DNA from: Lepidodermella squamata
Lineage: Eukaryota; Animalia; Gastrotricha
Length of the DNA: 64,000 nt
Direction: 5' to 3'
NCBI GenBank assembly: GCA_047495785.1
Contig: JBLDXI010000003.1
Location: 2,542,001-2,606,000 of the forward strand
Made by a program: the position numbers and the translations under genes. Under the pieces are notes generated by a model. It did not search any database and had not been told where the DNA came from. It saw nothing but the letters and a program-made list of their open reading frames with translations. Below, in pieces: positions 1 to 51,562 of the stretch; the stretch's first letter is position 1, and every line of letters begins with the position of its first letter.

Positions 1-799
1 AACCTGTTGCGCCAGAAGAGGATTTGTCAGTCTGCGAGCGACTCCGCAAAGAGTTCAAAAACATCTTCAACCTCGAACTTTTCACCGACTACGTCTTCAT
101 CACCCTCTTAATCGCGATGGCCTTTTCTATCTTGGGATACTACGTTCCGACCCTTTTGGTAACTGCCCAGGCTGAAGATACGGAGAAGTACGGCGTGACG
201 AAGGAAGTTAAGGAGCATTTGATCCTACTTTGGGGTATCGCGAACCTTGTCGGGCGTCTTTTCGTCGGTGGCGTAGCTGATCTTAGCCGTTACACGCGTT
301 TCTGCTCATCTCTTTCCCTGTTCTGCATTGGTCTGATTGTTTCAGCTATTTGCCTACTCGTCTTCCCGCACGTCATGCACTACGGCAATCCGGCGTTCAT
401 AACCTTCGTCGTTATCTACGGCTTCTTCTCCGCTCCTTTCATCACCCTGAGATCGACAGTCGTTCAGGATTTGTACTACGACCGTAAGCAACAGATTGCC
501 AGTTCATTTGGCTGGACGCTTTGGGCTGAGGGCCTTGTCATAGTTGGCGAGTTCTACATAGCAAGTAAGTTCCGTGTGCCAAGTAAACTTTGGAGTTTTG
601 GCTTAATTATTAAACTCTCGTTTAATTAGCATTTTTCAACTCGATTTCACCGCTGTGGGCCTATTTATTCGCCGCTGCGAGCTTCATTCTATCCGCCTGT
701 TTCCTGGTCGTGTCGATCCGCCACTTTTTCAAAATGTATGATAGGAAGATCGCTGATATGATCCGCGAGCAACAACTACACCCGCACTGCATGCCGTGA
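1..799 (+). CDS. MFS monocarboxylate-transporter-like protein (SLC16-like), 3' part; 5' end is outside the window
   Basis: Multiple TM helices with SLC16-like motifs (FNLELF, GYYVP, GIANLVGRLFVGGVAD, YGFFSAPF). GT-AG intron 565-629 restores the frame to TGA at 797-799, followed directly by AATAAA. Confidence 0.8.
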
Positions 800-1062
800 A
801 TAAATCTCCGCCGCTTTTTATACATATCTACGCTGTGCGATGCATCATGTCGGCTTCTGACTGTGTACTTCGTACTTTCACAAAAAACCCTTTTGGATAT
901 GATCCGTTAAGCTGTATAACTCCGCTGTTCGCCAGCAGAATAAAACTCGATATAAACTGTGTCACGTAGAAAATAATCACGCAATCACCACGCACTTGGA
1001 AACGTGAAGAAAGCTAATTACAGAACCACGGCAAAGATGTACAAATCTTGAAAAATGCTGAC

Positions 1063-1260
1063 ATTTAAAATGGTGTCATGTCTATTTGAACACAGGATTG
1101 TGTATCGCCCAATGGCTATGCGTACACATCGAGTGTGCGTGATTGGCTACTTGAACACTGCGCGCGTTTAAATTTTACTATGTGTCACGCACAATTGTGT
1201 ACGCATAGCCATTGGGCGATACACTTTTCCCGTGTTCACATAGTCACATCCATTTAAAAT
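1063..1260. repeat. Inverted-repeat (MITE-like or hairpin) element
   Basis: 1100-1128 (gtgtatcgcccaatggctatgcgtacaca) is the exact reverse complement of 1196-1224. Imperfect complementarity extends outward (tgaacac/gtgttca, aaatgg/ccattt) and inward (tgtgcgtga/tcacgcaca). Confidence 0.8.
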
Positions 1261-3535
1261 GATCTTATTTCTAATCTTCCTTTTAGGCACCATCGAGGCC
1301 ATGGCTAGAAAACCAAAAGATATCGCCATGTTGGTTATGATACCTTTCACCGGCGAAGCACCAAAGGCTGGTGTCGCCTGCAAATTGGCGACACAAATCG
1401 TCTTGGATGAGGTAAACTCACGCCAGGACATTTTACCTGATTATCACGTTATGGCAGATTATCGTGACGAGGGCCCCGGTTCCTTTCTGGCGTCTCGAAT
1501 AACGCTTGACTTCAAGAACAATGCCTCGATACTGCAGTCACCTATCGTCGTCGGTCCCTACTTCTCCCCGGGCTGCAAGGCTCTTGCAGGGTTTGTCCAT
1601 CAACTTGATCTTGTCCTAATGGCAGCTGGATGCGGTTCATCAGTTTTCACCGCGAATAGGAAGATATACCCCAATTTGTACCGCCTACGATCGAGCGCGG
1701 ATTTGATAGTTTATCCTCAGCTGCGATTCATCCGTGAGGTTGGTAAATGGAATCGGATAGCCATTTTATCTTACGTGGGAAATCAACTGGACTACACAAT
1801 AGCCAGTCTTCTTCAGAAGGAAGCGGCAGGCAAAAATGTTTCGACCACTTTTTTCGATATCGTCACCGACTTCGATGATTTAGCAATGAATTCTCTGAAG
1901 CAAAGTGATTCGAGAGTGATTGTTTTACAGGTCGCTGAGCCTCCACTCGTGCTGCGATTTTTGTGCCAGTCATTCAAGTTCGGATTGACGGGTCCAAAAT
2001 ATGCATTTCTCTCACTAAATGCAGCCTTCTTGGAGCCTGACACACTACCTGAAGTGATTGAGCCGCAGTGCATGAAATCGATGATCTTCGAGCAGATGAA
2101 GGTAACAATCTGGGTTGGGGGTCTTGCTGTTACGGAGAAGCCGAACGAGCCAACATCGCTTGGCTTCAGCCTAATAGAGTTCGATAAAAAATTCAGCCTT
2201 GCCTCGAATGGATCCAAGCCTGCTGATTATGATAAAAGAACTCCATGTTTTGATGCTACGCTCCTTGCTTTATTAGCTCTAGATGGGACAGAGAGAAACC
2301 TAGCTATCCAAAACCTGAGTTTGACTGACTATACCACTAACCCAAAAGTTGTTATGCAAATAGCTAATTCCTCGTTAGGGGCATCGAACGGAATCGGGAT
2401 TCGAATGGGCCGGCTGCGATATTCAAAGCGAGGTGAAGTGGATGAGGACCCGTTTATAGCCACGGTATGGTCTCCAGATGACCATACCATGAACCACACG
2501 AAAAGCCGATACTTGTTAATCCCGAATAAGTCAGCAAATAGCTACGACAGCTACGTTTCAGAAAGGGTTGAAAGCATTGGCTGGGCAACTGTTAATGGAG
2601 AACCTCCTAAGGATTCTCCTTTTATAAGAATCGAAATACAAGACGTAGGGGACGAGTTGTTCCCCGTAGTTGCATCCTTCTCTTTCGTGGCTGCATCGGT
2701 ACACTTTATCGCTCAAGTTATATATTGGTCGAAGAAACCCGGTGAACACAACATTTTTCAACTATTTCCGATCGGACTTGCTGTCTTCAACGCTGGAGGA
2801 GTTATACTAAGTGCATCAGCGTTAGTCGGCTCGATGAAAGCCAGTTATGCTCCAGCAGCGGTTTGCGTCCTTCGATTGATATTCACTTTTACCGGTGTTG
2901 CATGCCTCACTGGCTCAATTTTCAGTCTAATGCTTATGTTCGCAAAATTTCACATCAACTCAGGGGCTGCTAAGCGTAAATCACGATCTCATTCTTCAAC
3001 GGCTTTCCCTAGGATATCAAATCAAGGAAGAAAGGTCAAACTCAGCACGGATGAACATAAGACAATTGCTAGTCTGCGTCACAGATTCATAACGATCGTA
3101 GTCGTGTCGGCATTCGGAGTGTTACTTATAATTTGGCTAATCGTCGATCCCACTCAGTTCAAGTTTCGCCAAATTGCTGACACACCCATATATATCGCAA
3201 GCGAAGATGCGTATGTCAGCTATCAAGTTCCAGTCTGCTATTCAAGCTATGATCATGTGTTCATAATCACGATAGGTGGGGTGATAGGGATTCTGTTACT
3301 AATCTCTGCACATCTAGCCCTCCAGCTACGTCACGCTGAAGAATTAACGCAATTCAAGGAGTTCAACATTGTCAGGATCCTGATTGCAACATTAGTTCCC
3401 ATTTTAGTTTGTTCATTCCTGCTAGGAATTTTATTGCCATCTCCAATCACTCAAAAGCTGATTTTGACATTCATGACGTTAATCTCCGCACTAGTAACAG
3501 GCATCGTGACGCTGCTAGCAGTGTGTCAGAAATAA
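1259..3535 (+). CDS. Class C GPCR, GABA-B-receptor-like (Venus flytrap + 7TM), intronless
   Basis: Signal peptide; ANF-receptor/VFT motifs (EVNSRQDILPDY, VVGPYFS, YPNLYR, WNRIAIL, DSRVIV); no cysteine-rich domain; seven hydrophobic helices including WLIVDP. Confidence 0.85.
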   Translation: MILFLIFLLGTIEAMARKPKDIAMLVMIPFTGEAPKAGVACKLATQIVLDEVNSRQDILPDYHVMADYRDEGPGSFLASRITLDFKNNASILQSPIVVGPYFSPGCKALAGFVHQLDLVLMAAGCGSSVFTANRKIYPNLYRLRSSADLIVYPQLRFIREVGKWNRIAILSYVGNQLDYTIASLLQKEAAGKNVSTTFFDIVTDFDDLAMNSLKQSDSRVIVLQVAEPPLVLRFLCQSFKFGLTGPKYAFLSLNAAFLEPDTLPEVIEPQCMKSMIFEQMKVTIWVGGLAVTEKPNEPTSLGFSLIEFDKKFSLASNGSKPADYDKRTPCFDATLLALLALDGTERNLAIQNLSLTDYTTNPKVVMQIANSSLGASNGIGIRMGRLRYSKRGEVDEDPFIATVWSPDDHTMNHTKSRYLLIPNKSANSYDSYVSERVESIGWATVNGEPPKDSPFIRIEIQDVGDELFPVVASFSFVAASVHFIAQVIYWSKKPGEHNIFQLFPIGLAVFNAGGVILSASALVGSMKASYAPAAVCVLRLIFTFTGVACLTGSIFSLMLMFAKFHINSGAAKRKSRSHSSTAFPRISNQGRKVKLSTDEHKTIASLRHRFITIVVVSAFGVLLIIWLIVDPTQFKFRQIADTPIYIASEDAYVSYQVPVCYSSYDHVFIITIGGVIGILLLISAHLALQLRHAEELTQFKEFNIVRILIATLVPILVCSFLLGILLPSPITQKLILTFMTLISALVTGIVTLLAVCQK

Positions 3536-3641
3536 TTAAGGTGTGCGGTAATTGAGCGCACGTCAGTGCGCGCACTGTCTTGAAGTTCGTGTGAGGGGAT
3601 AATAAAATATACTTCGCTATTTTACTTGAGCGAACTTCGAA

Positions 3642-4199
3642 ATGCATCTAACCGAGTTGAATGAGCTGTTGAAAACTGAAGGCGATGAGCCTGCCGATTT
3701 GCGGTTTCAGAAATTACTTGCAGTCTCCGGCATGCTTCTTGAACTTCAAGAAGCTCTGCTTGCCGCGTTGGGTGATCAATCGGACGACCTTATCTGGGCT
3801 TGCTTCCTGCAGGCCATGCAAGCACCTTTTAGCAATGCCTCTGTCAAGCCGCTTCAAGTGTCAAGTAACAACGCTGAAGTCGGGAGCCAGATGCCGAGAT
3901 CAAGATTTGCGGAGGGAGGGAAGGCAAGAATTCGACGACCTGTTGAGGCGATTTTACGAGAAATTGCGGAAGTTGCTGCTAAAATCGCAGCGAAACAGGT
4001 TACGCTGAAAGAACTCGGGGATCGTGTCAATGATCGTTATGAAATTCATCAAAATTTGACTGCTGAGAAGTCTAAACTTGATTCTGCAAAAATTGCTGTT
4101 GCGGAGAAGGTCGAAAACGACCGACGTTCCCGAATCGAAGAGCTCAACCGTCAGATTTCTAAAAGACAAAATGCTGGAAGAATTAACTTGGAAAATTGA
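3642..4199 (+). CDS. Orphan coiled-coil protein (family member A)
   Basis: ATG-initiated 185-aa ORF with a heptad-rich C-terminal half. Shares its N-terminal motif with 4630-5634 and its C-terminus with the nested gene at 35466-35750. Confidence 0.6.
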   Translation: MHLTELNELLKTEGDEPADLRFQKLLAVSGMLLELQEALLAALGDQSDDLIWACFLQAMQAPFSNASVKPLQVSSNNAEVGSQMPRSRFAEGGKARIRRPVEAILREIAEVAAKIAAKQVTLKELGDRVNDRYEIHQNLTAEKSKLDSAKIAVAEKVENDRRSRIEELNRQISKRQNAGRINLEN

Positions 4200-4316
4200 C
4201 ATGAAATGCTGGAAAAATAACTCGGAAAATTTACTGAATTGATTCGATTTAAATGCTATTTCTGATTTGAATACTGTAGACTTAGCGTACAAGTGTTTAT
4301 TCCTCCTGTTTTGAAG

Positions 4317-4574
4317 ATGAATTCTGATTCAAAGGCGACACACCCTGAAGCAAAGCTTGAGCAACTTTTAGCGAAGCTCGCGTGTATGGATAATGATGAG
4401 ATGGTTATGCGAGAGCTGATTTCAAAGTTGGATGCCGAAATCGAAGCCTTGCAAGCTGAAAATGCTAAGAAAACTGAGGACATCAAAAGCATGATAATGG
4501 AGTCGGAACGAGAACGAAAGGCTTACATTGAAATGATGGCAGCGGAGCAAGACACCTTTCTTGATATTATCTAG
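4317..4574 (+). CDS. Short coiled-coil ORF (possible family member or fragment)
   Basis: E/K/L-rich helical ORF (LEQLLAKL, MRELISKLDAEIEALQAEN) lying between the two larger coiled-coil ORFs. Confidence 0.4.
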   Translation: MNSDSKATHPEAKLEQLLAKLACMDNDEMVMRELISKLDAEIEALQAENAKKTEDIKSMIMESERERKAYIEMMAAEQDTFLDII

Positions 4575-4629
4575 TACTATACGCTAACTCTAACGTTTCT
4601 TGTCAATTTTTAGGGATTATAATTGAAAG

Positions 4630-5634
4630 ATGACATCTATTGATATGGCTGAAAAGTCGCAAGAGCCGCAGCTTGATGGAGCTAACGGAGATTCCGCTGT
4701 CCTGGAGCTTCGTCAACTTCTTGCCCAGCCTGGCGTGCCGGATTACCTTATATCTGCTATTGAGAAGAGCCCACCTTCAGCCGACTTGATTTATGCCGCA
4801 TACCGTTTCGCCTACGAAAGGAACAAGAAATGCAGTATGCTTTGGGGCAGAATTACTTCCTTAGAGAAATGCGCTGAGAAGTTCTGCTCGCTCGAAGTTG
4901 AATTAGCCAAGCAAACTGCCACATCAGAAGTTCTTCGAAGTGATTTGGAGGCTCTGCGAAAACAATCGCTAATAACTCGAAGACTTGCAGCTATTCGCAA
5001 ACGGCGATGCGATCGTCGAAAATTAGAGGTGATCCGGCGTCAACGGGAGATCAACAATTTACGTCGACAAAATGCCGACTTGAAGAAAGATGTTGAGATG
5101 AAGTCTTCCGAATTGGAAACATCTTTGCAGGTTGCGATCAAACCAGCTGAAATGGAAAAGCTATCTCGAGAGTTCGAAGAGCTCCGTTCGATGGAAAGCG
5201 AGGCTCGATGCGAATTGGACTTGAAAGTCGCAGAACTGACTGAGGCCCGGAATCAAATTGCTAAACTAGCCGATAGGGTCGCAAAGTACGACAGGTTGAA
5301 GGAGGATTACTTCAAACTGCGTTCCCACAGTGCTAAACTAGCAACCGATGGGCAAAATCTGATGGGTGATTTGAAACTGAAGGAACAATGTCTCGCTGTG
5401 TTGAGTTCTGACCTTGCTAAATCGAAAGGAATGGTTGGTCAGATGATGATGAGTTTATCGGACAAGGAAGCGGAATCTGCGCGTTTATTTGCTGAGCTTC
5501 AAGAGCGGAAAGTTGAATTCGAGCGTGAACGGTTATCTGCTTCGGAAGAAAAGGCTGCATTGGTTGAAGCTCTGAAATTAGTATCAAGCCGCAACCACGA
5601 ACTTGAAAATCGTGACAATACTGTTGAAAAATGA
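4630..5634 (+). CDS. Orphan long coiled-coil protein (family member B)
   Basis: 334-aa intronless ORF with continuous heptad periodicity and a basic cluster (RRLAAIRKRRCDRRK); AATAAA downstream. Confidence 0.65.
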   Translation: MTSIDMAEKSQEPQLDGANGDSAVLELRQLLAQPGVPDYLISAIEKSPPSADLIYAAYRFAYERNKKCSMLWGRITSLEKCAEKFCSLEVELAKQTATSEVLRSDLEALRKQSLITRRLAAIRKRRCDRRKLEVIRRQREINNLRRQNADLKKDVEMKSSELETSLQVAIKPAEMEKLSREFEELRSMESEARCELDLKVAELTEARNQIAKLADRVAKYDRLKEDYFKLRSHSAKLATDGQNLMGDLKLKEQCLAVLSSDLAKSKGMVGQMMMSLSDKEAESARLFAELQERKVEFERERLSASEEKAALVEALKLVSSRNHELENRDNTVEK

Positions 5635-6083
5635 AATAATTGATTATGCAGTGAATAAATTGAATATTGTGTGAATTCAACTCCTTTTCTCTTTATTCTC
5701 TGCGCAATAAGCGCAATGCGGGCCGCTGATGAATTTTACAAGAAACTGAAGATATAGGATTACAAGAGTTGCAGCTAATCCCTACAGCTTATAACCTAGA
5801 TTGATCTTGCTAGCATAGACGATTGAAGAAAAAACTGTCGTAATTACTTATCGTTTTAGTTTTTTCTATGTCTTATAGTCTGGGTTTTAGATTGGAGCTC
5901 TAATTAATCGCTGATCTCCAATCAATAGCAAGCCTCCTTAATTACGACAGGTAACCCTGGCGTGTCACCTGTCAGGCTAAAAACTGTTTTTAGCCCAAGT
6001 TCTGAAGTCTGAAGTAGTAGGGTTCTCTTTCACGTTGCACAGATTGTCTGTTTAATTTTAGCATAAACTTCTTGCGTCCTCGA

Positions 6084-8770
6084 ATGAGTCCTCGAAACCG
6101 AGTGTTACCTCGGTCTAATGATGCTCCAAGTCCAGTAATTGATGACTACAGCGAAGATGGTACGGAACGCATCTCAAGAAATAACACCACGACAAATTTT
6201 GACAAAGCCGGTTGGGCCAGCCGGCACTCCTCAAAATTCAACTTAGGGGATATTTTCGCTAACAACTGCCTGGCAGCTGTTTTCGATCCGCAAGCCGAAA
6301 CAGCAACTGGTCGTGGAATACAAATGTTTTGGGTACGATATTTTTTATAGAAACAGCAATGAACTTTGACTGTTTGCGTTGCCTAGGTCGTTATTGTTTC
6401 GATCATTTTCACCTCTTCGATTCTAGTTCAAGTGTATACGGACATCGATTTATCAAGATCTAGATCGATCAACGCCAGAGAAATCTACGTAGGCAGCGCA
6501 AATATGGGATTTGATTTGACTAAAAACTTTGTTTTTCAGGCATCTCGGTCGCTAGTCAATTCAGGTCAGGTTCAAAAGTTCGAAAATTTGTAAGCATATC
6601 TTGTCTGTTTCAGTTTTTGACATGGTGGAACTATTGGCAAAAGAGATGGATGTGACCTACGAGTAAATTCTCCAATTCAGAAAAATTGGACAAAATGATA
6701 ATTATTGATGAAAGGTTTAACAAGGGACCGTACGACATTTATCTACAGAAATCCCAGGATATCACGAGAAGTGTTGACCAGGTGAAAAAATCCATGGCGT
6801 TTTGGTCAATTTCGTATAATTCGATTTATATGTTCAGAATCTGCTAACAAATACGCGCTGGCCAACGGAGGCAGATTTGGCAGCTATACCTGTGGAGCTT
6901 AGAGTCAACCTTACCAATCCGACTGTTCTCAGGGCAGCCATCCGGGCACAGCGAGATATGCGTCGGGCTATTAATGGTACTCCAGGTAAGCTTGTGTGCA
7001 AGAGGGAATACAGGATGAAATTTTGCTGATAAATTCAGAGGCTGATGTATTGAGATTTTACTCTACAATAATCGAACAGCTCACTACTGTTGGCGGAGCC
7101 ATCATTTCAAGATCGCCAAGGTTTACTGGCTATCAAGATCTGCTTTCGATCACTCCAACTTTTCAAATGGTTGGTTCAATTTTGCCCAACAATTTTACTT
7201 TCATAAATTTTGGCTTCAAATTACAGTGGATGAGTTTTAAACAATACTCCTCAGTCGGGAGAAAGCTGGCTTATGAAAGCAAGTGCTTGATTATAAGTGT
7301 TATGAGGTTCTTGAATCGCTATTTAAACAGATCGCACAATGGAATACGACGACCCTGTGTACACTAATTTGCTGGGCTATTTCCTGAAATATCAGGAATA
7401 TATGTCTGTAGCTGCTCGAATGTCCGAATATGCCTCCGATCAGTTTGTAAACCTTACAGCTCAAGATGAAAACAAAAATGTAGAGGCCATGCACGCACTG
7501 GTGAGTTGAGAATCCACTGTTACTCTGTTCTCAGTCTCAAGGCTCAATCGAACTATAGGTATTGGGAGCAGACTTCAACCTGATAGATGGCTGGACGTAC
7601 GGAGATGTGATGGTTAAACAGGACGTGAACATTCAATATGCTCTAAATGAATTGAGACGACGGATCGACTACTTCTTGACTACTCAAGCAGAAGCTTGGC
7701 CAGAAAAAGATAAATTTTGTGAGTAGTGCAAAGAGTTTCAGGTTCTAACTATAACTCACTTGATGCCCTAGCTGCCCCAATGTTCGCGATTTCCGCTGCT
7801 TTTGCTGTTACAACCTTTATTTTGCACGTGGTTGCTACGCGCATAATTCAAAAAGAAATTTGGAAAAATTATTTATTCCTTGATGGGCTGAAAGAAGCTC
7901 TGAAGCTATTGTACGATTATCTACCTCGCGATTTGGTTGGCCTTGCAATGTCGGAGCAAGTTGGCCCCGTCAGACATTTCGGAGGTAAACGCACTTCTTA
8001 TATGACATTTTCTTTATCTCATGTAAACCAGACACGTGTATCGCAATGATGGACATATACAACGCCGATGATCTATATATGGATCATGAACCCAAAGACT
8101 TCGTTGCTATTCTGAACCGCGCTTATGAATTGGTTGAGAGCAACATTATGAAGTCGAATTGCTTCAAAGTTGAAGTCCTGAGTAAGTTTTTTACTAGGTT
8201 TTCTTCATGAAATGTATTGAAATGAATTCTTCTCAGGCGATCATTTCATCCTGGGAACCGGTGTTGGCGAGCATCATGCGCTGGACCACGTAGGCTCTTT
8301 CAACCTGCCAGCTAGATATATCATATCACATTTTCAGGTGGTTGAGCTGGTGTACATTGCGCTGGATTTGCAAGAAAAAGTAGCAGAAATGAACAGCTTT
8401 TTCCCTCCGAATGAAGAAGTCCGCTTCCGAATGGCGATTCACAGTGGCCCATGCTTTGCAAGAGTTGTCTATTTGCAAGTTGCTAGAATGGCCATAGTTG
8501 GAACCCTGCTTGAAACTACGGCGCTTGTTCACGCGACTAGCATCGGTTACTTTCGATTCTAATGCATTTTCTTATGATAATCTCGAGGTTTTTATAGCTT
8601 CAAAGGTTCAAGTTACTCAAACGGTTTATGAACGCCTCAACAATCTTGGCAGTGATGTCGCGTTCTCAGCTCGTGGCTCTATTGGAGTTAAGAGTGAAAG
8701 ACTCAATCTGTATTGGGCATTCTGGCTCGACGAATCTATGTTCGCTAACGAGAATGAAAGCATGCCCTAG
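6084..8770 (+). CDS. Membrane NIT-domain-like guanylyl-cyclase-fold protein 1 (multi-exon; catalytically incomplete)
   Basis: Manual splicing gives TM, helical NIT-like region, second TM, LYDYLPRDLV linker, then class III cyclase fold (MMDIYN, FKVEVLSD, RFRMAIHSGP, KVQVTQ, FSARG). Confidence 0.75.
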
Positions 8771-9134
8771 ACTCTTCTACCTCTCTCTATAATCCTGATA
8801 CTGATTTCAGGGTATTATGTACCAATCACGAATGTCTTATTCAGGCTTGCGGCATCAATTTTTTATGCAAAATCACGCAAAAAAATAGCTAATCTTTTAC
8901 TAATCACCCGCGTGCTTTGGCTTTTATTCATTGTGCAGCTTATTGTTCTGAAATCCTAAATGATATATCTGACGTTCTTTGGAAAAAGAAATTTATATAT
9001 AGCACTCAATAGATACTGCACGTGACATAAAATACTCTAAAATCACACGAATATAAAAACACTCAAAATAATAAGTTGCGTCTGTGTTCCGCAAAATGAT
9101 GGCAGTTTAAAGGGTTGTTAGAGCCATTTTCAGG

Positions 9135-11966
9135 TTACTTTCTACGCCTACTCCCTGCTTCAGATTCTCCATTTACAGATGCTGCTCGCGACGCGAGGGA
9201 GCTAACCGTGCTCAGTGTATCATGATCGTCGAATATCAGCCCGGCGGTTGCTTCGTCTGCAGAAACCCAATAGACGGGAATCTCAGCCTTAAAATAATAT
9301 TAATAACATTAGCCCGAAAGATTGCAGAATTACCTCCCCGCGATCGATAACGCCCCGGTATGTCATATCAAGTTCAATCGGGCTAGTTAGCAAGCGGCTA
9401 TAGGTCGTCGCAGTGACCTGCATTTTCATAGGCAAACAAGCCGCGTGAGCGATAGCAGCAAGCTGCAGAACGTTCCCGAATAGCACGACCCTTGGCACCT
9501 GGAGGTAGACGATGCGGCCGTAGCCAATGCCAACATGAACGCCAATGCGAATTTGTAGTATTTTGTGCTGCTCATCAGTGTTGTTGTTCAAAGCTTTCAC
9601 AGCGTCTATAAGCTCCAGGCCAGCGAAAACATGCTCGATAACATTATCGACAGGGTGAAATTCACCCATTCCACTAGCGATTGTAACGTTATCGCCTGGT
9701 TCGGAGTGTCAATGTAAAGAATTACTGTAAAAGACTTGGTACTTACCAAACACTTCAACTTTGAAGCAATTGTATTTGGTAAAGCAAAGCTCCATTTGTT
9801 CGAAATATTCCGAAAGTTTTTCTGAGAATTCGTTCGCTTCGAGACATTGGGCCAATGTCTCGGAGTTAAATAGGTCCACAATCATGACGCAAAGGCCTTA
9901 GCATGGAAAAATTGTGTTTAAATGGCTTTTAAATGCTATAAGATTACTGTCGAAGCGTTTAACAGTCGTGGCTGTATCGGATCCATTTCTTACAGGTTTG
10001 ATCAGATGAGATGGAACGTAGTCATAATGCAGCGAGAGCGCCTCCTTCAAAGCTCGAAGTTTCGAAATGTACTTATCGACTTGCTGCAAAAGGTGCCAGC
10101 TTCCAGCGATATGGATGAAAAATGCTACGACAGCGATTCCACCAGCGACAGCGTACATGGCAACCGCTTAAAATAGGAAATTTGTATGGACTATCAGTGA
10201 CTTTGGAAAACTTACAGAATATTTCGTCGCTGGCCAACTCACTAGGGTCGTAGATGTCAGCAGCTGCAGCGAAAGCCACCTTAACTTGGCTAATAACATA
10301 GAGAATCCCTTGCTCTGCCTTTGCCGCAGTTGAAATCCAGCTATCCAATGTAATTTTATCAAACCGCCGCTCATCCATCTGTTTATATTTGATATACATT
10401 CAAATTCACAATTTCACTAAAATGTTCGAGCTAACATAGCCTTGGTAGGCCTCCATATCCTTGTAAAAATCTTGCGATGTGTAGTTATCAAGTTGAGCTT
10501 TGCTAACTTCACTGAAAAGGCGGTTGTTTGACAGGGACTGTGCATATCCCTCACGAGCTCGAACAAGATCTCGGTACACTTTGTAAACAAAATAATCAAA
10601 AGCTGAAATCCGAGATACGATAATTACTTACCGAAGTCATTCATGCTTCTAGTAGCCATTCCTTTAAAAAAGTCCAAAAAACTCTCCGCAAATCCAGGAA
10701 TAAAAGTTTAAGAAACGAACGTTCTCTAAGCAGCTTTCGTCCAGCGGTCGTATACTTTCGATAGCTCATCCACTGAAAAAAACATGTCATCATTTAGGAA
10801 AAGGAAAAATGAGTCCGGTACCATTTGATGATTTGGATGAATGGAGATGAGTAGGCGGAATCCTGGAAATCTCTGGGTGTTGAGTACTGCCGAACGAATG
10901 ACTTGATAAAGGCTATCGATAACGTTCAAATAGAAGTAGGTTGCTGCCTCCTCTGTCATAGAAATAATAGCCGTGTGTGATTAGGCAATTCTCATACCTA
11001 TGTCCTATGTGATGAACCCATACCTGAGAGATTATTGCGCCTCGTTTCTCTGTGAAACCGCAGGGCCGTTCGAAGAGCTGTTTGTGAAGAAACATTTGCC
11101 CGAAACTCAGGCTCCAAGGTCATCAAGTCGTCATCGTTCGGCCAATCGTCAGTCATAATCAGTTTCTACGATGTATAGGTACATCACAGATTTTACAGCA
11201 GCTAAAATTTCTAAAATACCGTGTCAACGTTCTGCATGACACTTTGGGCATTTTGCTGGAAAAAGTCGTAGCTTCCGGTGTTATATTCGTAAAAAACCTC
11301 CATTTCGTAGACCAATAGAGTCACCAAATCAAGCTGGTTCATAATTATTTTCATATTCCGCTGAAAAACTCCTTATCAGTGCACTCATTCAAATAGAAAT
11401 TGTAACTTGCCCTCAACGTTGTGTCCTCAACTTGTCGATCAATAACGCCAGCAGCATCAGGTAATACTTGAACAATTATGCCTGCGACGAATCCAAGAGC
11501 GATAGTTACGACCTGGTTTGTAATGAAACATTTGAAATTATTCTCGGAGTAACGACATTAGTTGTCATACCAAGAAAAGTTGTAGCATTCTAGATCGATT
11601 GGTCGACTCGGAACAGAGCAGGTCTGACAATTGTTTTCCCAACCTTCGCGAGCCGTGAAAAGCCCTACCTCCTATCGTAGAGGCCCCAGTGTTAGTCTCA
11701 TAGTCGAAAGAAGACTCCATGGAACTATTCTGATCAGCGTCGTATGCCTGCTGTGTCATGTTTTTCATTGCGATGATATCCCGAGATTCAATCGCAGCTT
11801 CAGTTTTCCCGCGTGAGGACTTAGACTTCTTGTCACTAGCTTTCGACGGGTTGGGTGGTTTCGCTGATGTGGGAATAGGTACGGTATTTGGCCTAGGTTC
11901 CATTGCCTTTGCGGTGGCATGTTGGTCTTCACAGTCGCAAGGACAATCAGGTTTGTGTTGAACCAT
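9135..11966 (-). CDS. Membrane NIT-domain-like guanylyl-cyclase-fold protein 2 (multi-exon; catalytically incomplete)
   Basis: Paralogue of the previous gene: HYDYVPSHL, IVDLFN, FKVEVFGD, LQIRIGVHVG, VPRVVLFG, KMQVT, MTYRG. Last exon ends ...GSRRRK* at 9135. Confidence 0.75.
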
Positions 11967-38300: not shown

Positions 38301-41300
38301 CCGGCAATTGCGGACTTGCGTCATGTTACGTTGTATCAGATTGAACGAGTCTTTTTCGCTAGAAATTATACGGCTGGTCTACTTTCAGCGCCTTCGTTTA
38401 GAATATGCCAGGTATTTTTCTAGAATTTTAATTTTGATTTTTTAGTGGGTCTCAATCTTTGCACCACTAAAATTGAGGCATTACTAAATTTTCCCAATTA
38501 TTTTTATCTGGGCTTTTTCTTGACTTTGGTTGGGCTCGATGATGAATGAATTGGGATTCTAAGGAAGACCTAAAACTCGGAAAATTCATTTGGGAAAATC
38601 TAGGGATGGAATCTTCAATTTATTGCCGGAAACCTAATTTTTCCACTTTTTTGGGGAAAATTAGCTAAAATAATTTTTTAAATTTCTACTTCCAGGAAAC
38701 TGATGAAAGATTTGCGCAGCATGTTGCTCGACTTTCGGTTGTTTTAACGGCCGATCATCCTGCTTTGGCCTTGCCTCAGCAACTTCACCGTGACGTGCCA
38801 TGGCCGGCCGTTCAGTACCATATTCGGCAAATGGGGGCTGCGAGACACCCTCTAGATAAAGCCGCCTGTCTTTGCGACGCAATTACGTCACTGAGTCGTC
38901 TTCTCTCGCTTGCTCTGCAAGGTTTGTAACAAAAACTGTTTTTAATGTCAACTTTCTCAATTGAACTTTTAGGATTTTTTATTTTAGTTGCTCGGAATTT
39001 ACAGAGGAATTTCGTAGCAAAATTTCAGAACTTCTTAAATTTTGAATTTTTTGAATCTTGATTCAGCCTCTTAGCGGCGAGGCCTTCAACCTTCAACAGG
39101 AAATTTGTTCGAATTTTATTATCATTCAAACTTTTGGGCAGGCGATGCGTTCAAAATCAAAATCTTCGTGGCTCAAGTCAATTGACACAGAATACAGTTC
39201 TTTGCTTGAGACCGGAACTATCAAGGAAATCAAAAATTCTGAAATTCCGAAAGATGTCGAAATTGTGGATACAAAATGGGTTCTCAGAAAGAAAAGAAAT
39301 GCCCAAGGGAACATTCTCAAGAAAAGGCACAACTTGTAGCAAGGGGTTTTCTTCAAGTTACCTCATTTTCCGAAACATACTCGCCAACTGCCTCGCTAAC
39401 TATAATTGGACTTTTGATTATGTTTGCGGTAGTAAATGGTTGGAAAATCCGGGGTGTTGATTTTGTGACTGCCTATCTCAACGCTTATTTGCCTGAAAAT
39501 GAGAAAGTTTACGTTTCAATCCCAGCCCCGTATTCGAAGCCAGGCTATTCGTGGAAATTAATAACAAGTTTTACGGCTTGCGCTCGAGTGCGCGCAATTG
39601 GTATTTCTGTTTGAGAGATCATCTTTGCAAAATTGGATGGAAGCCATGTCAATCTGAACCTTGTCTTTTCTTCTACTTTTCTGGAACTGAACTTATCGCG
39701 GCATGTGCATTTTTTGTGGATGATTTTTTGACTGTTGGTCGAACTGATGAGATAATTGATGCAAGAATTGCAGAATTGAAAGCAAAATTCAAAATTGTTG
39801 AGATGCAAGAATTGAATCTCTTACTTGGAATATCAATCAAAATTGGACCAAATTTCGTTGCTCTCAATCAGTCTCATTACATCGAAAAAATCATTGAGAA
39901 ATTTGGATTGAAGGAATTACAACCTTGCAAAATTCCTCTTGACCCAAATGTGAATTTTTTACCGAATTCTGGAACTTGCGCTAATGATGACAGAAAGTTT
40001 TTTCAATCTTTAATTGGAAGTTTGAATTATTTGGCTATTGCAACTCGACCAGACATTTCTTTCGCAATCAGTGAATTATCGAAATTTCTTTGTAATCCTA
40101 CTGGGGATCTTTTTCGCGAAGAAGATTGCATGCATATTGACTTTGGTCTGATTTTTTCTCGCAACGAAAACGAAAAAATAACTGGTTTTTGTGCTGCAAG
40201 TTACGCTGGCGATTTAATTTCGAGGAAATCGCAAAGTGGTTTTTGCTATAAACTCGGTGGCGCTGTTTTTAGCTGGACTAGCAAAAGGCAAGAAACGATT
40301 GCATTGGCGACTTGCGCGCTAGAGGCTGTGTGGTTATCTCGTATTTTTCTCGATCTTCGAATGATAATTTCTCCGATAACGATTTTCTGTGACTCGCGCT
40401 CAGCTATTTGCATTTCGCAAAATCCTATTTCTTCGAGAAAAGTGAAGCATATTGAAGTGAAACATCACTAAATTCGCGAGCTTTGCGATAACAAAACTAT
40501 TGAAGTCAAATGGGTAAAATCGGCTGATCAAGTTGCTGATTTGCTTACCAAAGCGTTACCATATCTGCAATTTGAAAATCTTCGTGCAAAAATGGGAGTA
40601 CGTTCAACAAAATTTAACAATCTTTTATTATCAGTCACTCTCTTCGCTTTATTCTCGTTATCATGTGGGCAAAGTATTCAAACATCCAGTTTGACTTTGG
40701 TCAGCAAGATAAACATTACAAATGCCGAAAAGGCAGAAAGCGCCATGACCGCCAATAATTCGGTAATTGTCTTAACGATCGATGATTTGTCCTTGGCTGA
40801 TTCGATGAATGATCAAAATGTCCCAAAATTTAAACGTTGGCTTCTAAAACCAAATTGTGACGCTGATTATCCTCGAAAAATAATAGCTCAATGCACAATG
40901 GGTTTGGTAAACACACAATCTTGATTCAGCCTCTTAGCGGCGAGGCCTTCAACCTGCAACTGGAAATTTGTTCGAATTTTATTATCATTTACTTGAATTT
41001 CGGGGATGAATAACTCGAGCAATGACTTTCCATATTTCATCAAATAATAATAATAGTCGTTCGTGTCTACTGTTTTTCGAAACTCCAAAAATGGTCCAAA
41101 AAGAGGCAATTATCCGAGGGCGCTATTATTTATTGGCAATTGGCTAATTTCACCATCGCAAGTCGTTTGCGCTGTTGACTTCTCGGTTGTCTGACCCACG
41201 CTGCTAATAAATCCTCGGCATCCGTTATCCGTAAAATTTGCAGTTTAAGGCTACGCAATTGGGCATGGTAGAATAGTAATTCTAATTTCTATTCCTCCAT

Positions 41301-42984
41301 GCAATCGGGGCTGCTTCGTCCCTCCTCCAGCGCGCAACCTGCTTCAGATTGGCATGGCGTGACCATCATTGAGGGATGCTATTAATCGATGAAATACGGT
41401 AATCACATATGGTCCCAGTGTAGGTCCCACTGTTTAATTTCAGTCAGTTGCATTGACGCTATTCCGAGAAAAGTTTTCCAGTCAAAATGCCTAGTTGGTT
41501 GAGATGGCGCTGGAACGTCGACGATATGAAAGATTTGCAGGTGCTCGAATAAGGACCTAGGCTAGCAAAGCAGTTGGCGACGCTTCGTAGATGATGAGTA
41601 TGATGATGGGGAAGTTAGTTGCGAGTATGCCTCGCCATTTGCGTTTTAATGGCTGGCGGCGAGGATAGCGATTTATCCACGGATATGAATTTGGCCAGGA
41701 TTTTATTCATCTGCCTCTTCGTTAAAAAAGTGGTGGAACCATGAAACACATTGCTGCGCGTTCACCATCACTCACCATCACTTTCCATCAGATCATTACA
41801 CCATTACACCATCACTTCCCGTCGTAGCCCTTCTTCCTTCGAAGACGTTTTAAAGTCAGACCTGGGTTACTATATATCTCATATATCCCATGGGATGTTT
41901 CCCAATTTCGGCACTTTCGCGGGTCTTTTGGTGCCAGGTCAACTTCAAAGGGGCGCCTAGCGGTTCTGGTATCATAACACAATTATACAGAACTATTCAA
42001 ATTTGCGAATTATTTACCTGGTCTTCGTCAGCCCCTCGCGGAACTCGACGTATTCGCCCTTTTGGTCCTCGCACCAACTGGCCGAAGTTGCACTTGGCCC
42101 ACTCCGTCTTGCCCCGGGTTCCAAAATGTTGCATCCCAAGAAACCAGACCGTCCGCAACAGGACTACAGCCGGGCTGTAGCCGAGCATGCCGGTCGTCAT
42201 CATGACAAACACGTCGTTCGCCACGAGGCACTCGGCCTTGTTGGGCTTCAGGCCTAAGCCTGCCCCCTTGGCCTCCTTGCACTTCGCGCGAATTGTGGCG
42301 CGTAGGATGGCAAAGTCGGGATGGGCGATCGCGGAAATAACGATTGCATTGATGTGGTGGAGGTGGAATGTTGGTGGTCGTTTCGGAGCCCGAAAATTCG
42401 GACTGCGGGTAGCCCCTCTCCATGGTCTAGGGAAGTATCCTTTCAGTTGATCAATATACTAGTAAAATTCTCTGAAACTGACAAAAGACCACGTGATTCC
42501 TAAGAACTTCATGGTAATCGATGGTAGGCCAAAATTGGAGGCCTATAACCTATGTCTATAAATAAAGGTCGTTCCTTGGGGATTAATCACTCGATTCTCG
42601 AATATTTCGAATTATTTTCGTTAGTTGAAATTTGATTCGGCGGAAATTAGACCCTTCTATCGATTTTTTCCAAGATTTTTCTCTTGAATTTATTATTTTT
42701 ATTTTTAAGGTGGACCAGTTTCGTCGGACCACCAGCTTCCAGCCTTGGTGCTAGTTTTAGTTCGCGCTAATACGCCACATCTTATCTCGACGAGAACGTA
42801 CATCCAGACTTTCATCGGCATGGCCGATATTCAATCGATTGTCATTCAATCGACCTCGCCGAACGGAGACGCCCCGGTTCACTGGCCCTGGCGCCACTCG
42901 CCGCAGGTCATGGGCTTCGCTTTCGCCCAGTTTTCAACGGCGATTGCTGCGATTCAGCAACTTATTCAGCAACTTGTTACTTGA
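32395..42984 (+). CDS. GAPVD1: GAPVD1/Gapex-5/RME-6 (RasGAP-like + VPS9 Rab5 GEF), multi-exon
   Basis: Divergent RasGAP-like N-terminus (AIADP, LLGQVANLFQ), SGRATPDVSGRDTPLS, ADILKKY, and a VPS9 domain (PWPAVQ, PLDKAACL, SSDHQLPALVLVLVRAN..LIST..YI) split by intron 38922-42709. Start codon is approximate. Confidence 0.8.
35466..35750 (-). CDS. Nested antisense 79-aa coiled-coil gene inside a GAPVD1 intron; paralogue of 3642-4199
   Basis: Exon 35750-35715 (MPLENNLQFYYE), 45-nt GT-AG intron, exon 35669-35466. About 33/67 identities to the C-terminus of ORF 3642-4199 by manual alignment. Confidence 0.65.
39054..39126 (+). repeat. 73-bp direct repeat, copy 1
   Basis: aatcttgattcagcctcttagcggcgaggccttcaacc...ttttattatcatt; 71/73 identical to 40917-40989. 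Confidence 0.92.
39127..40916 (+). mobile_element. Degenerate Ty1/copia pol fragment (RT + RNase H) with in-frame env-like extension
   Basis: DTKWVLRKK, LVARGF, ETYSP, DFVTAYLNA, YGLRSSARNW, FFVDD, IGSLNYLAIATRPDI, SWTSKRQ, CDSRSAI, KHIEVK, QVADLLTK. Contains frameshifts and a stop; gag, protease and integrase are absent. Confidence 0.9.
40917..40989 (+). repeat. 73-bp direct repeat, copy 2
   Basis: Matches 39054-39126 with two substitutions. Confidence 0.92.
41856..42360 (-). mobile_element. Crypton-like (DUF3504 tyrosine-recombinase family) remnant
   Basis: Minus-strand translation HPDFAILRATIRAKCKEAKGAGLGLKPNKAE...MLGYSPAVVLLRTVWFLGMQHFGTRGKTEW, and further on IGKHPMG, match the DUF3504/Crypton pattern (AK.KEL...G.G.KPN.A...LG..SP..LL.TVWF....HFG.RG). 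The frame is interrupted. Confidence 0.7.
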
Positions 42985-47332: not shown

Positions 47333-48185
47333 AACGGAAATAGTATATCGCGCCCCTGAGGACCAAAAATATACAGTGCCATGAATGATTACAATAACAA
47401 AGCGAAAAATAGAAATAAATATTATACTATGCATATAAATAGTGTTTTGTCTTCGTTTTTGGACAATGGCCATCTATAGTCTAGCCTTAATTGTTCCTGG
47501 TCCCAGAGCGGCGGGCGGTCGTGACACGCCTGTAATTGGCACGTAGAAATATCTCATTTTTACTTGTCGTGTTGTTTGCAGATGTGATGAATAGCTGCTG
47601 CCTACGCCCTGAAGGGTGGTGATACAAAGTTTTTTACTCGCATATACCTAGAATTTATAGCGCAGTAGCGGAATTTCTATCGATATCGACCCGCCTCGCA
47701 GGAAAAAACACTCTGGTATACAACAAAGGAAGTTTACTTCTGATCTCATCGTTTTTCGTGACATTTTTAAGACGCCATTTCTCATCCGGCCGCGCGCATA
47801 ATTTATCGCCGAGGTGCCTGTCAGACATGAAAAGTAAACAAAAACCTGAGCGCTTTTTACTAGAAAAATGACATATTTTCACGCGGCTATATGCATAATC
47901 ACGGGGCGCGATTGAATTTTTTGCCTCGTCATGATGGGCGTAGTGTTTTTTCATGACGTGTATATTGGATTAGTCATTGAGGTGCCATTAGAAATTCACT
48001 CGACATAAGCGCTCCCCCTGGATATCGCGTTCGCCCCTCACGTCCGGTCGCTCTTTTGCGCGAATGCCCGAGAAATTTCACGTACATATATAATATAGCC
48101 TCCTCGGTTTCTGCAAACATTGTGCGCTTTTTAATAACACTATTCATTACCATATTTTTGAATCTGTAGAAAGTTGAATCTTACA

Positions 48186-48689
48186 ATGCTACGAGTCCTT
48201 GCTATTTATGTCTGTTTAAGCGTTGCAGTCCTGTCCAGCTCAATCACGGAAGCTCGATTTCGAAGGAAAACGTACACTGGTCAGTTTCAGAACTACCATT
48301 TCTAGCGAAATTTTGAATTCAATTTTTTAGTTGGACTGCGATTTGGCGACCCTTCGCGAAGATATCAGGAGAATAATGTAGCGCCACCTGATAGCGACTC
48401 TGTGATAATAATGGAACCTCCAATTTCCACTGACGATTTAATCGCAGCTGCCGATGCGATTTCCGACGCGGATAACGACAAGCGAACGAGTGGATTCAGC
48501 GCGGCTTACTTTCCAGGTCAAATGGCTGTCATTGAAAGTTGCGCTGGTCACGGCCAACCCTGTACCCGAGGTCGGTCTGTTGGCATCCTCGGCGCTAGAA
48601 CTTGCTGTCCTGGTCTCATTTGCGCGTCAAAGTCGTTCTCAATGCTAAGCGGTCACTCAGTCTGCTATCCTGATACAAGAATCAATTAA
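48186..48689 (+). CDS. Secreted precursor A: signal peptide, GLRFG motif, acidic spacer, 6-Cys knottin (ICK-like)
   Basis: MLRVLAIYVCLSVAVLSSSITEA-RFRRKTYT|VGLRFG (intron 48280-48330); C-terminal C-x6-C-x13-CC-x4-C-x13-C. Confidence 0.85.
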
Positions 48690-49798
48690 ACAACCTGGGT
48701 TCTAAGTCATTATTTTTCATCTATAGGAATCCTATTTTAAATTATGTTCAACGATTGCAACTTTTTGTAGATGATAGATGAATAATGAAAATTTTGGACG
48801 TGCCAAGCACGGGGTGTGAAATTAATTGATGATTCATCTATATGTTAGTTCTGAGTTCCTGTAGTCTCTAGGATTTATTATTTTAAATTGCTGCCATTAT
48901 GGTAATGGCACAATCGCGAGAGTCTGTTTCCGCCCTGTCTTCGGCTACTTTGATGTCAAACATACGCCTTCCTCATAAAAATCGTATTGATTTTTGATAA
49001 TGACTTACTGATGTTTCAACTTTCGGCACAGAAAGACGTGAAAAGAAAATAATAAAATATTTTACTTTTGTATGAATACAAATTTTGATCGCGAACTTGC
49101 GGTCCGCCTGCATTGTTACAATAGTATCAATCAATTTCCGCTGGCCATTTCCACGCGACCCACCTGGCCGGAAGAAGGTGATTTTCATCAAAAATCAGGT
49201 TTAACTTCTACGTTGAATTTTGATCCCCATTTTTGCTCTTGGGACAATTTATGTCTGTTTCGACACGCCTAACAATTGATTAAACTGATTATTCATGCTT
49301 TTAATGAACGACGCTAGCCTGACAATTAATTGCTGGTCTGACTATTGTCCATTGCAGAATTTCGAATGAGAGGGAAGTGCTCAGCCTGTGCTGCTATAAA
49401 AGGCGCATAAAACTCATGAAAACCCTCAGGTTTCGGATTTTGCGAGGATTCAAATTTAAATCCTGGGCAAAATTCCACGCGATCAATCTCCGCACTATTT
49501 ACATCTCATTTAAATTGCGGATAATTCCGGCCATTGTCTGGGGGCATGGGCGTTGCCGAAGAATATCGCTACGCGATCGATGGAGGGCTAATTTGATTTT
49601 CGCATATTATGCCAAGTTTTTTTGATAATGATTTGCTATTTATTAGATGGTCATTTGCTCCGTCTTTTATGTCGATTACTTGCTTATTTATTTCCTCTGG
49701 TTAATCAACTGAACATGTATATTGGCGATCAGAAAACCTTTTCAGTACCAGACTTACTCCGCTCTTCATTAATTTTAGGTTTTATCTGTAATCTGAAG

Positions 49799-50304
49799 AT
49801 GATAACATCCTATTTGACTCGCAATCAATTATCAATATGTTTTGTCGCATTGCTTCTTAATTTGTATTATGCCGACGCTGGTAATTTCAGAAGAAGTAAG
49901 AACATCTTAAATATCAGTACCTAAGCATTTTACTATATTGAAATCTATGACTAGTTGGTCTTAGATTCGGCAACTTGAAGCCATCGGCTACCACAGCTGC
50001 CATTCCCGTTCCAAGCGAACGAGAAATAGACTTGCTGGAAGCCGCAGCAGAAAACATGGCTGCCCAAACAGATGATGACCACAACTTCACCCAGGTAATG
50101 GATGATACCAGTGCCGCAATCAGCGATATGTTTGGTCAGCGCTACGGTCCGTCTGTAATTGCTACGTGTTCGAATGTTGGGCAGGCCTGTACGCGAGGCT
50201 CGTGGGGTGGAGTAATGCTGTCGAGGCAGTGCTGCAGAGGACTTCGCTGTGTATCCAAGCATTCTTCAATGCTGACTGGGAAATCTTTCTGTCGAGCAGC
50301 TTAA
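49799..50304 (+). CDS. Secreted precursor B: paralogue with GLRFG motif and 6-Cys knottin
   Basis: MITSYLTRNQLSICFVALLLNLYYADA-GNFRR|IGLRFG (intron 49896-49954, same phase and position as in A); identical cysteine spacing. Confidence 0.85.
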
Positions 50305-51562
50305 TAAGATTCCGTAATACCATCACTATGTTTCAGTGCGGAAACATTTCAAAATGGTATTTCCAGTTGCATCACGATTTTAGCGTGCCTGAAGGCTAAT
50401 AAAACATGGACAGCGAATTACTGTCGTTATATTCTTCCATTCAATTTACATTCGTCGTAATCAGACTGAACGGTAGGTTTGAAGCGTTTACTTTCGAAGT
50501 TCAAAAGGGGTTATTCCAAGAAAAATCGCGACTTACAGATCTCTGCAGATCTATGGAGGACTATGGGCTATATCTGTATGATTTTATTAGAAAAATTAAA
50601 AGAGATGCTGGATTTGTTTATTTCATTTGATATTCATCGCCGCTTTCAACATGCGCCAACTTAAAAGCCAGTCAATCTAGTTTGCTAGAGAAATTCGCAT
50701 TAAGCTCAATAAAAGTTGAACGGGAGTGATTGTTTTACAAACTCCGAATATGACGTTGATCGTTCTATGAATTCAAGCGTCCGTCGGCAAATTTCCGTGT
50801 GATTCGATCTGAAAATTCTCCATGATTTTCATTTTATTTGAAATCAAGGTATCTCTGCGTCCGAAGCAAGGTTTGGTGACCGCTCATCGCGCCTGTCAAC
50901 CGCCGAATGGTAGCACAGCTGAAAGTTTAAGCATGTTGGGCAGGTCAAGACAACAGATTCCTCCTTCTTCATTGTCTCCCCGTCGTTTTCGAGAGTACTA
51001 CGATTTCTAACAATGTAAAGCAATCAAAAATTCAAACAATGATTCTTGACCTGGTGAAATTATGCAGACTTGTGGCGGAATCCTGGCGGAAAAAAATCAG
51101 CGATTTGTCATTCAAAAAATGTAATGCGGCTGCGTAGTCCAATTTTAGAAAATATTTTGTTTATATTACTAATTCTATATTATTAATATCAAAATATGGA
51201 TAATATATAAAACTTTGAAAATGATCTTCACGACGGGGCCTGCGCGCTAAATTTTCAATATTTGTTTTTGGTATCTGCAATATTAGCAGCCGCAAAAAAC
51301 CTGTGCACACAAGTCGCATTACGCTTATTACTGGGCGTATTCGCCATTTCTTGGTCCACTTGGGCGCTAGCTAATAAGTATCGGCTTATTCTGTTGTTTT
51401 GCAGCGTCACATTCAGCTGAATTTCGCGCATTCGAGATGAGCAATTCCTTATCTCTTATCTCTGATTGTTGTCTCCGCCATCTTTTGAATCTGATATCTA
51501 TGTGCGACTTTGCCTTTAGACGGAATAACATACCATTCTATCATTTTAGGCGCTTTGTGCAA

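Follow-up and report, generated by a model that had tools for sequence, protein, structure and literature searches.

Reading and translating positions 47600-50900 of the 64,000-nucleotide stretch of the Lepidodermella squamata genome analyzed here (the window), we found two two-exon genes on the + strand, 1.1 kb apart (Table 1). The first exon of each encodes a predicted signal peptide followed by basic residues (RFRRKTYT in gene 1, GNFRR in gene 2), and ends on the first base of a Val (gene 1) or Ile (gene 2) codon that exon 2 completes immediately ahead of the sequence GLRFG, so that the two genes share a phase 1 intron at the same site. The second exon follows the same order in both: GLRFG, an acidic spacer, a KR (gene 1) or QR (gene 2) doublet, and a six-cysteine module, with 18 (gene 1) or 8 (gene 2) residues between the doublet and the first cysteine, among which Y..[AS]VI is conserved. 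The cysteine arrangement C-x6-C-x13-CC-x4-C-x13-C is exact, with invariant loop lengths, in both genes and in the only homologue that we found outside this genome (P0001, described below). All three sequences carry an N-terminal hydrophobic core with a Kyte-Doolittle mean of 2.5-2.7 over 12 residues (2.74 in gene 1, residues 4-15), and an AlphaFold2 (AF2) model of the full-length homologue places a helix at residues 2-21, in the signal-peptide region. Re-reading and translation bore out the original prediction as to the coordinates of both genes, their motifs and the identical intron position. A TATA-like box (TATATA) lies at 48087, upstream of the 5' UTR of gene 1, which is at least 56 nt long; no promoter repeats shared between gene 1 and gene 2 were found.

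Table 1. Features of the two precursor genes, in window positions
Feature	Position	Strand	Basis or remark
Gene 1 5' UTR	48130..48185	+	minimum extent; X3 contig starts at 48130, X1 contigs from 48165
Gene 1 exon 1	48186-48279 (ATG 48186)	+	translation; hydropathy; cDNA-type contig cover
Gene 1 intron	48280-48330	+	51 nt, GT..AG, phase 1; joint skipping 51 nt in X1 and X3 contigs
Gene 1 exon 2	48331-48689	+	translation
Gene 1 GLRFG codons	48333..48347	+	translation
Gene 1 acidic propiece, net charge -7	48348..48485	+	KR at its end, 48480-48485
Gene 1 predicted mature peptide and stop codon	48486..48689	+	67 aa, charge +3
Gene 1 six-cysteine core	48540-48665	+	within predicted mature peptide
Gene 1 3' UTR	48690..49054	+	cover to 49054 (X1) and 49023 (X3); AATAAA at 49051
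Gene 2 exon 1	49799-49895 (ATG 49799)	+	translation; hydropathy; X1 contig covers 49800-49895, joined to exon 2
Gene 2 intron	49896-49954	+	59 nt, GT..AG, phase 1; joint skipping 59 nt in one X1 contig, 96 letters on the shorter side
Gene 2 exon 2	49955-50304	+	translation
Gene 2 GLRFG codons	49957..49971	+	translation
Gene 2 acidic propiece, net charge -8	49972..50142	+	QR at its end, 50137-50142
Gene 2 predicted mature peptide and stop codon	50143..50304	+	53 aa, charge +7
Gene 2 six-cysteine core	50167-50292	+	within predicted mature peptide
Gene 2 3' UTR	50305..50403	+	X3 contig to 50377; AATAAA at 50398

Three public sequencing runs were compared over positions 48000-50600: X1 (2015), X2 (2024) and X3 (2014). 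The contigs of X2 cover every base of this interval without a joint, which identifies X2 as a genomic run. X1 and X3 cover exons and UTRs only, with zero depth from 49131 to 49739 and inside the introns, and their contigs carry GT..AG joints from 48279 to 48331 (X1 and X3) and from 49895 to 49955 (X1). This exon-only coverage, together with the exact joints, establishes that both genes are transcribed and spliced precisely as had been proposed, the cDNA-type contigs of the two older runs skipping exactly 51 nt and 59 nt. The + strand was taken from the GT..AG orientation, as the contig data carry neither strand nor expression level nor tissue. One X1 contig bears, before position 49800, a 20-letter loose end that is absent from the genome and that we take to be the reverse complement of a SMART cDNA primer; an adapter-like sequence missing from the genome fits a cDNA library for X1. 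A spliced leader at gene 2 was considered and rejected, the 20-mer being read as this presumed adapter. The same contig, the sole cDNA contig to reach the start of gene 2, begins with the second letter of the ATG, at 49800 (region 49780-49802), and an AG directly precedes that ATG, so that gene 2 may have a further leader exon upstream.

In a whole-genome search the two paralogues matched each other at E 4e-8, a similarity not attributable to chance, and protein and profile searches of the 121-Mb genome returned only these two copies, all remaining matches being weak (E above 0.2). Among 5.8 billion clustered proteins the sole match was P0001 (E 7.5e-24, 44% identity, full coverage), which was also the only hit of a HMMER profile against 1.84 billion representatives. 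A word-index search with the mature-domain alignment yielded no match, and a scan of JGI metagenomes for the pattern returned 221 stretches, none of which was confirmed. There was no significant match in Pfam, where the best entry was Toxin_12 (E 1.8), whose 9.7 bits fall short of the cut-off of 21, nor with a sequence profile against the PDB, where spider toxins matched at E above 5; by sequence, the genes thus fall outside the curated knottin and toxin families. Judged by these searches, they appear to form a lineage-restricted orphan family, in keeping with the original prediction, which had described a family that it did not recognize. Our literature searches found no work linking gastrotrichs with knottins and none on Lepidodermella neuropeptides; the L. 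squamata genome paper (PMC11660948) mentions neither knottins nor neuropeptides, and a paper on a 'two-finger toxin' fold was set aside as not relevant, dealing with 12-cysteine Argos-like domains.

P0001 is an ORF, probably starting in truth at Met36, on eukaryotic contigs in three metagenome assemblies of the European Nucleotide Archive (ENA). The ORF is intronless at the junction and runs straight through RFRRKSYT-I-GLRFG-G, which independently confirms the splice inferred in L. squamata. Searches and models were run with exon 2 of the L. squamata genes, and the intronless P0001 took the place of a full-length protein. The original prediction named three outcomes that would refute it, namely a shifted splice, homologues without GLRFG and a match to a described family; none of them was observed, and this homologue retains the motif. 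Its contig (L005, positions 1-10579) is collinear with window positions 28600-48700 over about 20 kb, at 60-86% amino-acid identity, a block that comprises a USP9X-like gene, a large unnamed gene, VPS9, an EF-Tu-type GTPase and a small minus-strand gene. This collinearity makes P0001 the positional orthologue of gene 1, and the occurrence of the block in three assemblies points to a related, unsequenced animal in those samples. No counterpart of gene 2 lies within 10 kb on the orthologue's contig. Downstream of the orthologue, at 10887-11836 of the contig, there is a different pair of ORFs (226 and 106 aa), possibly a single spliced gene, to which nothing in the window corresponds at E below 1e-5. 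Within the collinear block, two VPS9 exon matches (window 38923-42709) stand about 3.8 kb apart here and are contiguous in the metagenome relative.

The availability of three sequences (gene 1, gene 2 and the orthologue) allowed selection to be assessed module by module using Nei-Gojobori counts. Synonymous sites are saturated throughout (pS about 0.8-0.9). At the GLRFG codons, all five differ synonymously between gene 1 and the orthologue and four synonymous differences separate gene 1 from gene 2, with no amino-acid change in either comparison, so that the constraint acts on the peptide rather than on DNA or splicing. The acidic spacer contains indels and reaches a pN of 0.51-0.63 versus a pS of 0.68-0.87 (0.51 and 0.74 between gene 1 and the orthologue), and so evolves nearly neutrally. 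In the cysteine core pN is 0.19-0.36 against saturated pS; the values of 0.33-0.36 belong to gene 2 versus the others and 0.19 to gene 1 and the orthologue, and gene 2 is the long branch of the three. The original prediction had spoken of two selected modules. Both GLRFG and the six-cysteine domain are indeed under protein-level selection, but the conserved stretches extend further than that wording allowed: in the orthologue pair the N-terminal element runs RFRRK[TS]YT[VI]GLRFG.P.R, and on the C-terminal side a stretch of some 8 to 18 residues leading up to the first cysteine (Y..[AS]VI) is conserved as well.

Allelic differences among runs X1, X2 and X3 were classified as well. Across the whole coding sequence of gene 1, 13 are synonymous and 2 change an amino acid (V4I in the signal peptide and D20E in the spacer); the predicted mature peptide of this gene has six synonymous and no nonsynonymous ones. 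In gene 2, exon 2 carries four synonymous differences, none nonsynonymous, and a TAA>TGA change at the stop codon (window 50303, in run X1) that leaves the end of the reading frame unchanged; the signal peptide carries one synonymous and five nonsynonymous differences. Taken over both kinds of comparison, the mature domain is the slowest-evolving part of the precursor and the signal peptide the fastest. Run X2 contains two haplotypes at roughly equal depth, which differ at 7-8 of 129-169 positions (48259-48387 and 49798-49966) and at 5 of the 51 positions of the gene 1 intron, indicating high heterozygosity at the locus.

The order of the six cysteines, C-C-CC-C-C, is that of the inhibitor cystine knot (ICK) in all three sequences, so that the knottin-type framework of the original prediction holds in P0001 as well as in both genes. 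The classical ICK has a loop 2 of 3-6 residues and disulfides I-IV, II-V and III-VI, the third threading the ring formed by the others; the loop 2 found here, at 13 residues, lies outside that consensus. AF2 modelling of the mature domain from the three-sequence alignment gave a hairpin between cysteines 5 and 6 at a moderate pLDDT of 61, and the model of the full-length orthologue (pLDDT 50) combined the signal helix and this hairpin with a disordered region to which the N-terminal motif belongs. A Foldseek search with the model produced no significant match, its listing being dominated by ICK peptides and colipase-fold proteins. In an unbiased VIA-align scan of 48,161 representative PDB chains, 40 chains reached Z >= 2, all of them small disulfide-rich domains and mostly ICK, with every Z-score in the scan below 5. 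Two sea-anemone peptides scored best, Ms11a-2 and Ms11a-3, which aligned at Z 3.9-4.4 with an rmsd of 2.1-2.4 Å over 39-41 of 40-42 residues; behind them came, among others, psalmotoxin, tachystatins, atracotoxins and, at Z 2.0, AgRP; IGFBP N-domain types were also among the small disulfide-rich structural matches. ICK structures align with the model at Z values of up to 4.4, and colipase-type folds score similarly (PDB 3s2k, Z 3.7; 1imt, Z 4.0). A shape search of the ESM Atlas favored colipase-type domains, namely the Dickkopf C-terminal and prokineticin domains (TM about 0.55), and its feature neighbors were clusters of spider ICK toxins at a score of 0.86, below the level at which much meaning attaches and usable as a lead only.

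These colipase-fold proteins (the Dickkopf C-terminal domain, prokineticin/MIT1) resemble the predicted domain in their disulfide-rich, two-hairpin shape, but they have ten cysteines in five disulfides and, in prokineticins, an AVIT N-terminus, whereas the precursors described here have six cysteines in all after the signal peptide and no sequence match to that fold. Our reading of the model is a knottin-like, disulfide-rich hairpin domain with a putative cystine topology.

Like the ICK toxin and defense precursors of spiders, cone snails, sea anemones and horseshoe crabs, the proteins encoded here comprise a signal peptide, an anionic propiece, a basic site and a C-terminal C-C-CC-C-C domain, the predicted hairpin core of which superposes on the structures of Ms11a peptides, psalmotoxin and tachystatins at about 2 Å rmsd. 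Unlike ICK toxins, they lack sequence membership in those families, have long loops 2 and 4 (13 residues each), carry some 8 to 18 additional conserved residues ahead of the first cysteine, open the propiece with an ultra-conserved motif, and are conserved rather than hypervariable in the mature part. Cystine-knot ligands are also released from endogenous precursors: in vertebrate AgRP/agouti and in arthropod agatoxin-like peptides, a convertase cuts the pro-domain and frees the C-terminal ligand. The secreted precursor layout is shared with these proteins, and AgRP is one of the fold matches, but they have 8-10 cysteines in a different loop spacing and no sequence similarity to the genes described here. 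The architecture accordingly matches knottin prepropeptides such as the toxin, defense and AgRP-type precursors, in a mild variant and in an orphan family; what sets it apart is that the propiece opens with a short motif that is perfectly conserved.

An anionic propiece paired with a cationic disulfide-rich peptide is a classical combination, and in the three sequences the charge ranges from -7 to -9 in the propiece and from +3 to +7 in the predicted mature peptide. The KR doublet is conserved in the orthologue pair, and gene 2 has QR, a weak convertase site. We favor, at a probability of roughly 0.55, the reading that these are paralogous, lineage-restricted prepropeptides from which the anionic propiece is cut off to release a cationic, knottin-like peptide, tentatively an endogenous ligand. 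The N-terminal signal peptide would direct the precursor into the secretory pathway, where the propiece of 46-57 residues would be removed at the putative basic site (KR in gene 1 and the orthologue, QR in gene 2). Release of a peptide of 53-67 residues would follow, its six cysteines forming a knottin-like, disulfide-locked beta-hairpin core. The RFRR..GLRFG element at the start of the propiece would most likely serve the handling of the precursor, as a furin-type RXRR/RR site combined with a sorting or recognition element. The mature peptide may then act as an endogenous signaling or regulatory ligand, binding a receptor or an ion channel.

The same processing could deliver a defense peptide, an antimicrobial or antipredator toxin secreted from gland or epidermal cells. 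The predicted mature domain is cationic and nearly or wholly free of acidic residues (the six-cysteine core has none), it is preceded by an anionic propiece, and tachystatins and many toxins stand among its fold neighbors. Against this, the genome holds no more than two copies, the orthologue has kept its syntenic position, and the mature part evolves slowest and the signal peptide fastest, the reverse of the usual pattern in venoms and antimicrobial peptides. With conservation highest in the mature domain, a variable signal peptide, two copies and a syntenic orthologue, the family evolves unlike typical venom or defense families. Of the label 'toxin' in the original prediction, then, the knottin-type framework stands and the toxin role is unproven; we lean towards an endogenous ligand over a fast-evolving venom or antimicrobial peptide, and regard a defensive function as somewhat unlikely.

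The protein might also be secreted uncleaved, its basic motif, acidic linker and cysteine domain working as one unit, be it a matrix, cuticle, adhesive or binding protein. This would be in keeping with cleavage sites that are putative, with the QR of gene 2, which is not a strong convertase site, and with the Dickkopf- and IGFBP-type binding modules to which the Atlas shape search points. It sits poorly with a linker that is near-neutral, carries indels and is predicted to be disordered, as expected of a discarded propiece, and with the anionic-pro/cationic-mature pattern and the KR kept in the orthologue pair, both of which fit processing. We consider this reading distinctly unlikely.

What remains to be accounted for is the GLRFG motif, which occurs once per precursor and is predicted by AF2 to be disordered. 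It is no widespread cassette in the genome: searched with a degenerate DNA pattern for [V/I]GLRFG, it yielded 49 matches, compared with 50 in a reversed control, and in the 30 of the 49 that were examined an acceptor with a cysteine-rich ORF was present only at the two genes. The motif is preceded by a furin-type RFRR in gene 1 and the orthologue and by RR in gene 2, and its Gly is followed by D-P-S-R-R (gene 1), G-P-N-R-L (orthologue) or N-L-K-P (gene 2). Dibasic sites therefore flank it on both sides in gene 1, where a non-amidated 13-mer between RFRR and the downstream RR (a longer peptide elsewhere) could be a second product, in accord with the purifying selection on the motif; the orthologue and gene 2 lack the downstream RR, so that no common product can be drawn, and we think such a peptide very unlikely.

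A further possibility, and the one put forward in the original prediction, is that GLRFG gives rise to an RF-amide of kisspeptin type. As in the RF-amide precursors (FMRFamide/FLP, luqin, kisspeptin), RF-Gly here lies close behind the signal peptide with a dibasic site upstream, and kisspeptins end in G-L-R-F-amide. Amidation, however, needs a Gly at the C-terminus, which is normally exposed via a basic site right after it. No such adjoining K/R is present in any of the three sequences, as the original prediction had itself cautioned for the two genes, and no mono- or dibasic site is so placed that the usual convertase and carboxypeptidase route could leave the Gly at the C-terminus. Unlike RF-amide precursors, moreover, which pair Gly with a basic site, the genes here contain a single copy of the motif and none of the rest of the kisspeptin core: that core is N-x-x-S/F-G-L-R-F/Y-amide with a G-K/R-R flank, and the residues found upstream are KTYTV, KSYTI or RRI, with no basic flank. 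The RF-amide reading is thus unsupported, on the same grounds, in 3/3 sequences, and true RF-amide release from these genes is highly doubtful.

This also bears on the bipartite neuropeptide precursor of the original prediction, which would deliver both an amidated xGLRF-NH2 from its N-terminus and a free knottin, each bioactive: the perfect protein-level conservation of GLRFG despite saturated synonymous change, the RR or RRK ahead of it and its position right after the signal peptide, an arrangement also seen in luqin- or NPF-type precursors, speak in its favor, but D, G or N and then P, P or L follow the Gly, the next basic residues (RR at +4 in gene 1, a lone R at +3 in the orthologue, K-P in gene 2) would not expose it, and the motif is single-copy and predicted disordered, so that we rate it highly improbable. 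The same low credence goes to a dual-output prohormone, in which a basic RF segment would be freed by non-canonical processing to act with the knottin on one target class. The DEG/ENaC channels (FaNaC/ASIC-type) would be a candidate for that target, since both RF-amide peptides and ICK peptides such as psalmotoxin are known to act on them. Returning to the processed prepropeptide that we favor, and as no common cleavage after the Gly can be drawn, we regard GLRFG as the conserved segment with which the propiece begins; a role in processing, sorting or recognition is our best guess.

At present the finding stands as a well-supported annotation with a modest open question, and involves no new mechanism. 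Gastrotrichs are almost unexplored molecularly, and the two genes add a verified, expressed orphan family of secreted peptides with a clear processing logic. Were the dual-output prohormone to prove true, it would be a new bilaterian peptide-signaling family first found in a gastrotrich. If the motif is a sorting or processing signal, it would offer a handle on regulated secretion in Gastrotricha, and the knottin, should it act as an endogenous ligand, would add a further cystine-knot hormone from beyond vertebrates and arthropods.
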